A stretch of DNA of 62,950 nt, filler included, from Octopus bimaculoides (Eukaryota), in the NCBI RefSeq assembly GCF_001194135.2. It is 7 parts of 7 records of this genome, joined end to end, with 100 filler letters (N's around TTAATTAATTAA, not from the genome) between each part and the next. Parts side by side here need not be neighbours in the genome. Positions count along the whole stretch, not along the records: positions 15,923 to 32,884 come from NC_068986.1; 6 more parts are not named here. One strand, 5' to 3'. This document shows, piece by piece, positions 16,279 through 27,420 of the stretch. Each line of letters opens with the position of its first letter. Position 1 is the first letter of the stretch. The translations under genes and the position numbers were made by a program. The notes beneath the pieces are model-generated. The model ran no database searches. It had not been told where the DNA came from and saw only the letters and a program-made list of their open reading frames with translations.

Positions 16279-16408
16279 TTATAAACTATCTGAAATATAT
16301 GAGGGGCTTGCTTTGCAATCACGTGCTTTCAGGTTCAGTTCCACTAATCGCCACATTGTGCAAGATTTATTTGATATAGCGCCGAGTCGACCAAAGAAAT
16401 TTGAGGAG
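16279..16408 (-). CDS. Orphan secreted protein, terminal coding exon: (S)SSNFFGRLGAISNKSCTMWRLVELNLKARDCKASPSYISDSL*
   Basis: Acceptor tttcccctcttAG|C in phase 2, matching the previous exon; TAA at 16281-16279; ATTAAA about 80 nt downstream (16203-16198). Confidence 0.65.
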
Positions 16409-16425
16409 CTAAGAGGGGAAACATG

Positions 16426-16466
<41 letters not shown>

Positions 16467-16564
16467 CGTGCGTATGTGTGTGTGCGTGCGTGTGTGTNNN
16501 NNNNNNNNNNNNNNNNNNNNNNNNNNNNNNNNNNNNNNNNNNNNNNNNNNNNNNNNNNNNNNNN

Positions 16565-16602
<38 letters not shown>

Positions 16603-16926
16603 CGTGTGTGCGTGCGTGTGTGCGTGCGCGTGTGTGTGTGTTTTCAACTTTAATTCTGTCCTACTTAAGAAACAGAAAACAGTCTGTCATAGACTTCGCT
16701 GGAAACGAAACACCTTTTTAAATAAAAAATAATAAAAGGATTTCATTGGTTTGTCAGTTGAAAAAGCTAACCGGAAATGGTTACATTTATATTTCAACGT
16801 CTGAATGAGAACTAACTGGAGCTAGATGTAGATCAGAAGAGAACATGTATTACAAAGACACTTCAACAGTGATATGGAGGAAATACATTATATAAGCTAA
16901 ATTAGATAGTCAAAATATACACTCAC

Positions 16927-17074
16927 CTGTCAAAACACTGTCCCCCTGATTTTGATATGACTCGAACGCTATTACTTCCGGTAATCGAGCACGTGCGAGT
17001 CCAGCATTCTGTATTTTCCAAGCTCGCCCAAGTTTTACCGTGGGTAACACAATTGCCATAATTGTCCCGACAAT
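16927..17074 (-). CDS. Orphan secreted protein, coding exon 2: (D)CRDNYGNCVTHGKTWASLENTECWTRTCSITGSNSVRVISKSGGQCFD(S)
   Basis: Poly-T acceptor ...caacaacAG|AT (phase 1, compatible with the signal exon); donor ACAG|GTGAGT (phase 2); open frame with a C-x-D..G-x-T-W..C-x4-C pattern. Confidence 0.8.
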
Positions 17075-17399
17075 CTGTTGTTGACAAAAAAAAAAAATTA
17101 TTTATTATTAATATTTAAAAAAATTATCTTTGACATAATTAGGACTATAATGTTTTAAAGCTTTTGCAAAAAGCCAGCAGTTTCAGGAGATCGGGTAAGT
17201 TGATTACATCGACTCTAATGCACCAGAGTTACTTGTTTTATCGAACTGGAAGGGATCAAATTCAAAGACGACCTCGGTGGAGTTTAAAGTCAAACTCGAA
17301 AACCAGAAGAAATTCCGATAAGCATTTTGCTTGACTTGCTAACTATTTTGCCAATTCACCGTTAGTTTTTCTTGTCTAGTTTTTTATTAAGCGTAATTT

Positions 17400-24559: not shown

Positions 24560-25060
24560 TCCTCTTTGAAATGTCAGAATGTGAAATATTGTTTGTGCAT
24601 GCAAGGAGAGAAGGTTTCATCCCTAATATTTAAGATGTTACCTGTTGATTTCGATTATATTTAGCTTATACCCCGTCCGCAGTATTTTCTGGCTCCATGT
24701 TATCTGGTGGTTGCTTACTTCTTCTTTCAATATCTATATAATATTGGGACGGAGGTCTGGCATGTTTTTTTTTAAATTGTTGTCCCTGAATGACGCCACG
24801 TGTCGTGTGAATCTATTTTTAAATGAGTTGCCCGTCACTCCGTCTTTGTTACTTCGTCAGGTTCCATGATTCTGGCCTTGTACATGAGTACTTTTTCAAG
24901 ACTGTTATTAGTTAGAGGACGGCAGTAGTGGAGATCTACAGTTAGTGTTTTTCGAGGGACAGACTTAGTGAATTTCTTTTAATTGTGACTGAGTATTATC
25001 GACCCTATATTGGGGTGGCAACTATAGCTAACTTTAACCTTGTTTCTATTGAAGATCCTA
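24560..25060 (-). mobile_element. Penelope-like GIY-YIG endonuclease fragment
   Basis: Minus-strand GVTGNSFKNRFTRHVASFR and TSVPILYR-like segment; degenerate. Confidence 0.55.
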
Positions 25061-25357
25061 TGATATTTGTGTGAATGTGTCAAGTGATTGTCTATTTATT
25101 TCAACAATTTCCTATGTTCATGTAGTAGCTACATTCATTCTATAAGATGGTTTAACCCATAAGATTTTCCTCTGTCTGTGTCTTTTTTATGCAAATATAC
25201 ATGCATATTATCAATTTATGATAATAGAAAGGAAATATTAATAAATGTTACACGAAAAGATTGATTGATTAACTTGAAAAAACAATAGGCGCGCATATAA
25301 TTTACAAATGTTTAATTATTCGGTATCTTTTTTTTTTATATCCGAGTGGATACTTAC

Positions 25358-25436
25358 CTTCACTGAAAGCTCCTATTAAAGTTGTTATTGTTGTCAAAGA
25401 CAACAAGCAAAATGTAAATAGTCGTTTCATAGTCAT
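25358..25436 (-). CDS. Orphan secreted protein, coding exon 1: signal peptide MTMKRLFTFCLLSLTTITTLIGAFSE
   Basis: Acceptor tttgtaatttcAG|ATG; basic N-terminus followed by a hydrophobic core; donor GAAG|GTAAGT, phase 1. Confidence 0.8.
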
Positions 25437-25472
25437 CTGAAATTACAAATTTAATTGTAAATAATCGAACTA

Positions 25473-26719
25473 TCAGGTTGAGTAAAAAGTAAGCAATGTT
25501 TTGGACCATGAAGAATTTGTACCGGATTTTTACTGAGTTTTGAATTCCTTTTTTTTTTTAACACGTTTTTGCAATTGACTGATAATACAGGCATAGATTT
25601 GTCCAGATGCATCAATAAATTAATATTGATATTTTTTTCACCCTTGTTACAATCATTGGAAATGGAACTGTCAAAGAGCGATATTCAAGCAATTTTGCTT
25701 TTCAACTTCAAAATGGCCGTAAAGCAGCTGAAACTGCTCGCGATATCAATGAAACGTTTGGTGAGGAAATGACCAGTGAGTGGTCAGCTCGAAAATGGTT
25801 TAAACGATTTCGCAGTGGAGACCTGGGCCTTGAAGATCGCGAGCGTAGTGAACGCCCATCTATCATCGATGATGATCAATTAAAGACCGTCGTTGAAAAA
25901 GATCCACGTAAAACCATTTGAGAACTGGCAAAATAACTTCAAGTTAACCAGAAAACTGCCTGCAATCATTTGCATGCGATCAGAAAACAAAAAACCTCGA
26001 CAAATGGCTACCACACGATTTGAATGAAAATAAGAAAATCCGTGGTTATGATATTTGCTCGTCGCTTCTTCTCTGTAACCAGACCAATCTATTTTTCGAC
26101 CGTATAGTAACTTGCGATGAAAAGTGGATTCTGTACAATAATAAAAATACGTTCACCGCAGTGGTTGGACCAAAATGAAGCACCGAAAACCTTCCCTAAA
26201 CCCGAGCTCTTCGAAAAGAAGGTTATGGTGACTGTTTAATTGTGTACTGCTAGTCTCATCCGCTAAAACTTCTTAAAACCCGGAAAAACCATTACTGCAG
26301 AAACATATTGCCGTGAAATTGCCGAAATGAACGAAAAACTGCTAATCTTCATGACAATGCTCGACCATACGTTTGACTAATGACGCTCCAGAATTTGAGG
26401 GAACTTGGTTACGAAGTTCTTCCACACCTAGCTTATTCCCCAGACCTTTCCCCTACCGACTACCAGTTTTTCAAGCGCCTCCAGGGTTTCCTGTGAGAGA
26501 AGGAGTTCAAAAATAAAACCGATACCTAAAGGACATCAGTTCGAGAACTCCAGATTTTTATGTTACCGGAATAAACAAACTTGTAACTCGTTGGCAAAAA
26601 TGTGTTCATTGCAATGAGACTAATTTTGATAGATAAAAGTTCCATATTGTTGAAATATATATTGTGATAAATGATAAATTTCAAGTTTCAAAATGTTGCT
26701 TACATATTACTCAGCTTGA
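25473..26719 (+). mobile_element. Near full-length mariner transposon (1247 bp), transposase pseudogenised
   Basis: About 30-bp TIRs TCAGGTTGAGTAAAAAGTAAGCAATGTTTT / AAAATGTTGCTTACATATTACTCAGCTTGA; TA on both sides; WLPHDL, IVTCDEKW, HDNARP and YSPDLSPTDY motifs; frameshifts and stops. Confidence 0.92.
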
Positions 26720-27354
26720 TAGTAATTGCTTTGTAATTCAGAAAAAAAGTAGATACAAATGTGAACTTTTGGGACGCATATATATGTATATATATATATA
26801 TATNNNNNNNNNNNNNNNNNNNNNNNNNNNNNNNNNNNNNNNNNNNNNNNNNNNNNNNNNNNNNNNNNNNNNNNNNNNNNNNNNNNNNNNNNNNNNNNNN
26901 NNNCTTTCATCCTTTCGGGGTCGATAAATTAAGTACCAGTTGCGCACTGGGCTTGAACTAATCGACTGACACCCTCCCCACAAATTTTTCCTTTGAAATA
27001 CAGAAACTGTCTATTTCTGCCAGCTGGGTGGATTGGAGCAACGTAAAATAAAATGCTCTGCTAAGGGACACAATGCGCCGCAGGGTGTCGAACTCACCAC
27101 AATATGCTTTGACACACACTCACTTCTCGACCTTTAGGTATACTCATTTATTTATTTATATACAAATACACAGAAGGATAGAGACAGAGACAGACAGTGA
27201 TTTCTCGAGTTATTTCCTGCGGGAGGCTAAAAACTTGAGAGAATATGTTCCTCATTATAATAAAATCAGCCGTACTGAATTTATGTACGTAATTTCCTTT
27301 AAAAACTAAGTGATTAAGCCAACATGATACAATATATTCTACACTTTTACTTAC

Positions 27355-27420
27355 CTTATGAACTTGAAGATGGTTACGTTTGAGATGTAAAATGATATAA
27401 GTAAATTTCAAATGCTTGAA
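27355..27420 (-). other. Candidate non-coding 5' UTR exon of the orphan secreted-protein gene (5' end approximate)
   Basis: Consensus donor cataag|GTAAGT at 27354; splicing to 25436 puts aag directly before the ATG. Confidence 0.4.

Follow-up and report, generated by a model that had tools for sequence, protein, structure and literature searches.

The Octopus bimaculoides gene LOC128248060 and a family of small cysteine-rich mollusc proteins with a predicted fibronectin type I-like fold

Which protein is encoded by a handful of small minus-strand exons on an Octopus bimaculoides chromosome, and to which family of proteins does it belong? The exons lie in the window, by which we mean the whole 62,950-nucleotide (nt) stretch of O. 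bimaculoides DNA that was analysed; the part that concerns us here (positions 15,923 to 32,884, hereafter the piece) is 100% identical to chromosome CM046606.1 of assembly GCA_001194135.2 at about 107.25 Mb. An initial annotation had placed in this piece an unrecognised gene for a small secreted cysteine-rich protein of 118 amino acids (aa). A gene of that kind is supported, but it did not need to be discovered, as RefSeq already holds it as LOC128248060, an “uncharacterized protein” of 122 aa (P0001), and the genomic locus of P0001 (L001; CM046606.1, 107.25-107.28 Mb) matches the piece at 100%, gaps included. Taken as a whole, the explanation that fits best, and that we hold to be very likely, is that the locus is LOC128248060, that its product is a secreted protein made of two fibronectin type I (FnI)-like modules, and that the 118-aa model is a mis-join. 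The outcome is an ordinary correction of a gene model, and with it comes a mollusc family that is coherent, though uncharacterised, and has a predicted FnI-like fold.

The 118-aa query matched two proteins, O. bimaculoides LOC128248060 (P0001) and O. sinensis LOC118763783 (P0002, 154 aa). P0001 consists of the first two exons of the initial annotation with 46 additional residues between them, and is ended by “R*” after “...GGQCFD”. The 46 residues were mapped by tblastn to 19823-19686, and the exons 25436-25358, 19823-19686 and 17074-16923 translate exactly into P0001, the stop being a TGA within the GTGAGT donor (GAC AGg tga). The coding structure is a signal-peptide exon followed by two phase 1-1 exons, each of which encodes one cysteine-rich beta module of about 45 residues (Table 1), and the product contains 10 cysteines.

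The elements of the 118-aa model are real as sequence: the three minus-strand segments 25436-25358, 17074-16927 and 16408-16279 are present (79, 148 and 130 nt), with acceptors tttcag/, caacag/ and ctcttag/, donors AAG/GTAAGT and CAG/GTGAGT (a slash marks the exon boundary), phases 1 then 2, and a joined open reading frame (ORF) of 118 aa. As a coding model they form a mis-join, which skips the 138-nt module A exon at 19823-19686 and appends a non-conserved ORF, 16408-16279, that has no support. The initial annotation had correctly suspected a missing exon from its odd count of cysteines; the covalent dimer that it offered as another reading of seven cysteines falls away with the 10 cysteines of the RefSeq product. 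Its “degenerate second module” was right insofar as two homologous modules exist, and wrong as to place, the other module lying in the missed exon and not in the proposed last one. Overall, its observations are partly confirmed and its interpretation is partly supported.

The RefSeq structure is mirrored in a related octopod. Both module exons and their splice sites persist in the O. sinensis ortholog, as do all 10 cysteines and the stop within the donor. In the two Octopus species alike, the ORF and four splice sites are intact, and so is the position of the stop. The module A exon, bounded by tatttag/ and /gtaagt, retains all its cysteines there and has a homologous exon in the paralogs, and the module B exon is the best-conserved part of the family. 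At the end of module B, O. sinensis has the same stop-in-donor layout (GAA AAG TGA, or EK*), and the paralog LOC128248057 reads AAG TAA at that position.

Secretion of the LOC128248060 product may be deduced from a signal-like N-terminus common to all paralogs, which have a shared MT(R/Q)LFPFCLL start. This N-terminus has an n-region made basic by KR, a hydrophobic core of 17 residues and a small residue at position -1 (Ala23), and it forms a helix at residues 10-22, with low predicted local distance difference test (pLDDT) scores, in the AlphaFold2 (AF2) model. The family alignment points to cleavage after Ala23, and the 122-aa precursor would then be processed to a secreted product with 10 cysteines, about 99 residues long and about 11 kDa in mass.

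A phmmer search with P0001 against 1.84 billion representatives returned 16 matches, namely “uncharacterized” octopus proteins (E-values to paralogs of 1e-18 to 1e-30), Lottia gigantea LOTGIDRAFT_230688, which has four modules, and a Logan transcript contig, whose 288-aa ORF holds three A+B units. Also in the list was P0010, a 1695-aa bacterial cadherin-like protein, rejected as a compositional false positive. The recurrence of the A+B unit in the Lottia protein and in the Logan transcript, at borderline E-values, suggests that the family is wider than octopods. Within O. bimaculoides, four members including LOC128248060 lie on one chromosome between 106.72 and 107.28 Mb, and LOC128248060 belongs to a cluster of octopus paralogs that are arranged in tandem and evolve fast. 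Its relatives LOC128248056, LOC128248057, LOC106872057, LOC106872088, LOC128248175, LOC106869804, LOC106872966 and LOC128248081, together with LOC118763783 and LOC115212787 of O. sinensis, all bear the name “uncharacterized protein”. The paralogs resemble LOC128248060 in the type of signal peptide, the A+B modules, the 10-cysteine framework, the exon plan and the chromosome region, and differ from it in overall sequence (25-50% identity) and in their variable C-terminal tails.

In an alignment of 12 sequences, the shared signal peptide is followed by module A and module B, with ten cysteines that are invariant or nearly so (C28, C31, C37, C52, C57, C74, C81, C96, C101 and C119), and then by the variable tails. 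The two modules are homologous to each other, following the pattern C-x5,6-C-x5-W-x8-C-x4-C-x16,17-C, and the last cysteine of A is the first cysteine of B. The exon plan signal / A / B was found in three paralogs; one module per phase 1-1 exon, with a phase-2 donor two codons past the last cysteine, characterizes the window, O. sinensis, LOC128248057 and LOC106872088, the LOC128248081 subfamily having a different 3′ end. One paralog subfamily has 12 cysteines, the last of them on a separate terminal exon. Pfam gave nothing above threshold for the 118-aa protein, P0001 or the 12 family members. The UniRef label “UPAR/Ly6 domain-containing” attached to P0015 (LOC106872966) looks unfounded, because none of the 12 aligned members, P0015 included, has a Pfam UPAR_LY6 match. 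The alignments of the family and of its modules were also used as queries in word-indexed protein searches, which gave few or no matches and were uninformative, and full-text searches by LOC, UniProt and LOTGIDRAFT identifiers and by topic found no literature on the family.

The O. sinensis gene is annotated somewhat differently from its O. bimaculoides counterpart. The LOC118763783 model takes an internal Met of module A as its start, and its last two exons, both rich in Lys, lie 9-12 kb downstream (positions 21793-21879 and 23999-24160 of the O. sinensis locus, L002). These 3′ exons (FVNPKINKK... and SEQRYKL...) were not found in the 10 kb downstream in O. bimaculoides, of which about 2.9 kb is N; since they have no detectable counterpart there, LOC118763783 is probably a mis-modelled ortholog.

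What kind of modules are these? Built on the family alignment, the AF2 model of the whole protein has a mean pLDDT of 83.8, with a mature part that is all-beta and mostly above 90, and module B modelled alone reaches 84.0. When the whole protein was compared with the PDB by Foldseek, ranks 1-15 were all FnI module pairs (probability 0.96-1.0, E-values of 6e-4 to 0.09, about 90 columns); with module B alone, ranks 1-14 were all FnI (template modelling score 0.51-0.70, root-mean-square deviation 2.2-3.9 Å, identity 15-28%). Both modules are thus predicted to fold like FnI, as modules of about 45 residues in which a short two-stranded hairpin packs on a three-stranded antiparallel sheet, and this arrangement is present in the AF2 models. 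Of the three resemblances that the initial annotation had named, FnI therefore holds at the level of the fold, and both von Willebrand factor type C (VWC) and beta-microseminoprotein fall outside the Foldseek top 50.

The best surviving alternative, although quite unlikely, is that the modules are derived VWC or single-VWC subdomains and that the protein is an extracellular binder of growth factors of the bone morphogenetic protein type. VWC is likewise a cysteine-rich extracellular module whose N-terminal subdomain is FnI-like, and it is common in invertebrates, whereas FnI proper is known from chordates; moreover, Pfam VWC (PF00093) gave one faint hit, in one of the 12 members at E = 0.044, below threshold. 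Yet all members stay below the gathering score of VWC, the 50 top Foldseek hits include no VWC structure, and the modules lack the cysteine-rich C-terminal half of VWC.

A second alternative would rescue the 118-aa product as a genuine isoform in which module A is skipped and 16408-16279 is the last coding exon. Several points speak for it: with phase 1 at either end, the symmetric module A exon can be skipped without loss of frame, the donor that follows module B is conserved, close to consensus and employed by other models in the family, and the proposed acceptor has a good pyrimidine tract. Furthermore, isoforms X2 and X4 of LOC106872057 are predicted as signal plus module B, without module A, which makes the join of exon 1 to module B a possible minor isoform, not the main product. 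An exact-sequence look-up of the locus of P0018, an isoform of LOC106872057, gave no record. It is the last exon that renders this alternative decidedly improbable. The segment 16408-16279 aligns to the gap-free O. sinensis locus at about 86%, flanking non-coding DNA doing so at 83-89%, and in that species the acceptor has changed from ttAG to ctGA, a TGG (Trp) codon has become an in-frame TGA stop, one of the two Cys codons encodes Tyr, and two indels of 6 nt and 1 nt have occurred. The substitutions fall 2/6/6 on codon positions 1/2/3, a spread without third-position bias and hence without a coding signature. The segment occurs in no protein of a 5.8-billion-cluster search, it is matched by none of the C-terminal tails of the paralogs, and it would give the product seven cysteines, against even counts in the family. 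As for the length of its ORF, at least 43 in-frame codons are open after 33 of the 318 AG sites in the 10 kb past the donor (about 10%), five of these 33 sites also having a pyrimidine-rich tract. Judged by these sequence comparisons, the exon is within chance expectation and not conserved, and consequently the 118-aa product is unsupported. Of the exons proposed by the initial annotation, then, that of module B is kept in the related octopod and the last one is not.

Equally doubtful, in our estimation, is the view that LOC128248060 is a decaying or non-functional duplicate whose ORF is intact by chance. In its favor, the ratio of nonsynonymous to synonymous substitution rates (dN/dS) between the two Octopus species is 0.75 overall (0.30 in module A and 2.96 in module B), the exons are no more similar between the species than the introns, the O. 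sinensis model has no signal exon, and the database contains no Logan or transcriptome-derived copy of the protein. Against this view, both species keep the ORF, four splice sites and the stop position, AF2 predicts the fold with confidence, and the 19 amino acid changes in 93 residues spare every one of the 15 Cys/Trp positions (P = 0.023). This pattern is consistent with a secreted protein whose scaffold is fixed while the rest evolves fast.

Finally, a relationship to beta-microseminoprotein (MSMB/PSP94), to which the squid contact pheromone belongs and which the initial annotation had put forward, is very improbable. The two are broadly alike in being secreted, in their mature length of about 95-100 residues, in having 10 cysteines and in their pair of small beta domains, and hhalign does align a short local C-x-D-x2-G...W...C...C motif. 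However, PF05825 matched 0 of 12 members at E <= 1, the hhalign probability was 5.4% with a single module and 0.07% with the protein as a whole, the MSMB chains 3ix0, 2iz3, 2iz4, 1xhh and 6rwc, all present in the PDB sequence set, do not appear in the Foldseek top 50 of either model, and MSMB is built of two unlike domains in place of two homologous repeats.

Several points weigh against the preferred reading, that of LOC128248060 as a secreted protein with two FnI-like modules. As regards the gene, it is the RefSeq model together with conservation that places its true 5′ and 3′ ends, and no signal exon was found by blastn, tblastn or six-frame regular expressions within 10 kb upstream of the O. 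sinensis ortholog. A further 3′ exon, coding or untranslated, is possible after module B, because the donor there is strong, conserved and used in paralog and O. sinensis models: in O. sinensis it reads AAAA/GTGAGT, again with an in-frame TGA, and in the models of that species and of LOC128248057 it leads to small, non-homologous terminal exons. The nucleotide identity of the exons to O. sinensis (87-88%) is not above that of the introns (83-89%), and with dN/dS near 1 this means that constraint on the LOC128248060 copy is weakly shown. As regards the modules, the relation to FnI is one of fold only: the single-module Foldseek E-values (0.12-1.6) are not significant alone, Pfam fn1 (PF00039) gave no match at E <= 1 (E <= 10 in one scan) across the 118-aa protein, P0001 and all 12 members, nothing relevant came from searches of PDB sequences, whether the query was the single protein, the family profile or the module profile, and a 28-module profile aligned by hhalign to six FnI modules from PDB chains reached a probability of 22% (P = 9.5e-4, 31 columns). 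The disulfide map and the function proposed below are inferred.

Table 1. Features at and around LOC128248060 (window coordinates).
Feature	Position	Strand	Basis or remark
Candidate 5′ untranslated region (UTR) exon	27355..27420	-	Only the donor AAG/GTAAGT is defined; read from the sequence
Assembly gap, intron upstream of the ATG exon	26804..26903		TA-rich simple sequence on either side
Coding exon 1: start codon and signal peptide MTMKRLFTFCLLSLTTITTLIGAFSE, ends in phase 1	25358..25436	-	Residues 1-26 of P0001
Coding exon 2: module A CDGCSVEGQCHSYGEIWLEKTDIMCALKLCRWKSETKWRVYTKTV, 138 nt, phase 1 to 1, 5 Cys	19686..19823	-	tblastn with P0001
Assembly gap, in the intron that separates module A from module B	17975..18111		
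Coding exon 3: module B CRDNYGNCVTHGKTWASLENTECWTRTCSITGSNSVRVISKSGGQCFD, 5 Cys	16927..17074	-	Kept in O. sinensis with both splice sites
Stop codon TGA of the RefSeq model, inside the conserved CAG/GTGAGT donor; unspliced reading ...FDR*	16923..16925	-	Exact translation to P0001
Assembly gap in a (CA)n microsatellite, 3′ of the coding stop, inside the second intron of the initial annotation	16498..16564		
Exon 3 of the initial annotation	16279..16408	-	Unsupported as coding; probably 3′ flank or UTR

The remainder of the locus consists of introns, gaps and repeats. For the candidate UTR exon, an acceptor directly precedes the ATG in exon 25436-25358, the next exon in line, and its donor at 27356-27349 is a perfect AGGTAAGT, of which the window contains three, two on the minus strand, against 0.52 expected, which is suggestive. 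Possible poly(A) signals are ATTAAA at 16654, AATAAA at 16371 and ATTAAA at 16203. The piece has five runs of N, three of them within the span of interest, and as all three lie outside exons, no reading frame crosses a gap. The (CA)n tract at 16420-16650, which surrounds the gap at 16498-16564, is long in the window and only about 25 bp in O. sinensis, where it is a short CA run devoid of coding sequence. The gap at 17975-18111 lies within a segment of about 840 bp (18244-17403) that is missing in O. sinensis (L002 11957 to 11962). Given that the intron is flanked by the same two exons in O. sinensis and that the CA run is short there, no exon is hidden in these two gaps.

The 17401-17613 part of this segment is a repeat of about 200 bp, of which the O. 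sinensis locus contains at least three copies (L002 10956-11157, 13987-14196 and 18500-18693). It looks like an insertion of the short interspersed nuclear element type. Degenerate ORFs at 19972-20848 (+), 21919-22248 (-) and 32100-32660 (+) lie partly within the first coding intron, partly upstream of the gene; they resemble the C-terminal part of ORF2 of retrotransposons lacking long terminal repeats (motifs EFGITKC / LEFGQNKC), an identification that is unconfirmed, a Pfam search of the intronic ORFs giving a faint zf-RVT hint alone (E = 0.042). Inverted copies of about 180 bp with 74% identity, at 18393-18566 and 28058-28239, belong to a dispersed repeat that is also found in the O. sinensis locus, and a tetranucleotide-type simple repeat at 15923-16160 reads YLSIYLSI... 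in all three minus-strand frames and runs to the edge of the piece. Outside the piece, about 9.7 kb upstream of the ATG, L001:292-357 is 55% identical to the terminal exon of LOC128248081 VCTQDHIVSDILQFIYPPVRQC (E = 7e-4), which suggests a neighboring family member or the remnant of one.

How might such a protein work? The cysteine framework would be accounted for by the disulfides 28-31, 37-57, 52-74, 81-101 and 96-119. In this proposed map the boundary cysteine would serve both as the last cysteine of one module and as the first of the next, and the five disulfides would hold the two modules in a rigid rod. The scheme gives even cysteine counts for the 10-cysteine LOC128248060 and for the 16-cysteine Lottia protein; the pairing in the 12-cysteine subfamily can only be guessed. 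Outside the cell, the protein may act as a binding module, its partners docking by addition of a beta-strand to the exposed sheet edge, as they do with FnI pairs. Its role is most likely that of a fast-evolving extracellular binding protein, and would be one under diversifying pressure, for instance in chemical signalling, reproduction or immunity. The pheromone, venom or defence role that the initial annotation had envisaged is speculation.

For annotation, the practical consequence is that the gene model needs no rescue, being already in RefSeq, and that the 118-aa product is not to be propagated. The broader interest lies in a family that has a confidently predicted FnI-like fold in molluscs and no Pfam model. 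Its tandem cluster, variable tails and high dN/dS make its members reasonable candidates for secreted signalling, reproductive or immune proteins of octopus. Two origins of the fold may be considered. The modules might be true, very divergent FnI homologs outside chordates, that is, free-standing secreted tandem modules throughout the molluscs, with a new “shared boundary cysteine” framework and a fast-evolving tandem cluster in octopods; we rate this as unlikely. Were it so, the origin of the finger module would be pushed back, or linked to the N-terminal subdomain of VWC, and the dN/dS of about 3 in module B could be the trace of extracellular signals in the course of diversifying, for example chemical cues passed by contact or through water. 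If the likeness instead arose by convergence, the family would offer a clean case in which a small beta module rich in disulfides was invented anew on another cysteine framework.

It is with the FnI module itself that the octopus protein is best compared. FnI modules have four cysteines paired 1-3 and 2-4, with a C-x-C in strand D, an aromatic pair formed by a Tyr in strand B and the Trp or Tyr of G-D-x-W, and one phase 1-1 exon for each module. Like the FnI pairs of known structure (2-3FnI, 2cku/3cal; 4-5FnI, 1fbr/2rky; 8-9FnI, 3ejh), the octopus protein is a tandem of all-beta modules of about 45 residues, each encoded by one phase 1-1 exon, with a cysteine at the start and at the end of the module and a G-(D/E/K)-x-W motif (G-K-T-W and G-E-I-W). 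In the hhalign alignment, the family motif G-x-C-x3-G-E-x-W is paired with G-x-x-Y-x-x-G-D-T-W of FnI, which sets the second cysteine of the family opposite the invariant Tyr; nearly all modules have Cys at this position, and the first Lottia module has Tyr in place of the second Cys. Unlike FnI, the octopus modules find no match in Pfam fn1 and carry C-x4-C where FnI has C-x-C, a spacing that within the family is found only in the type-B modules of the Lottia and Logan relatives, and each repeat has five cysteines, the one at the boundary being apparently shared between modules. The settings differ as well: to our knowledge, FnI proper is known from chordates, where it is a component of mosaic proteins, and the module is regarded as a chordate invention, whereas the octopus protein would be a free-standing, secreted, 11-kDa protein of a mollusc.

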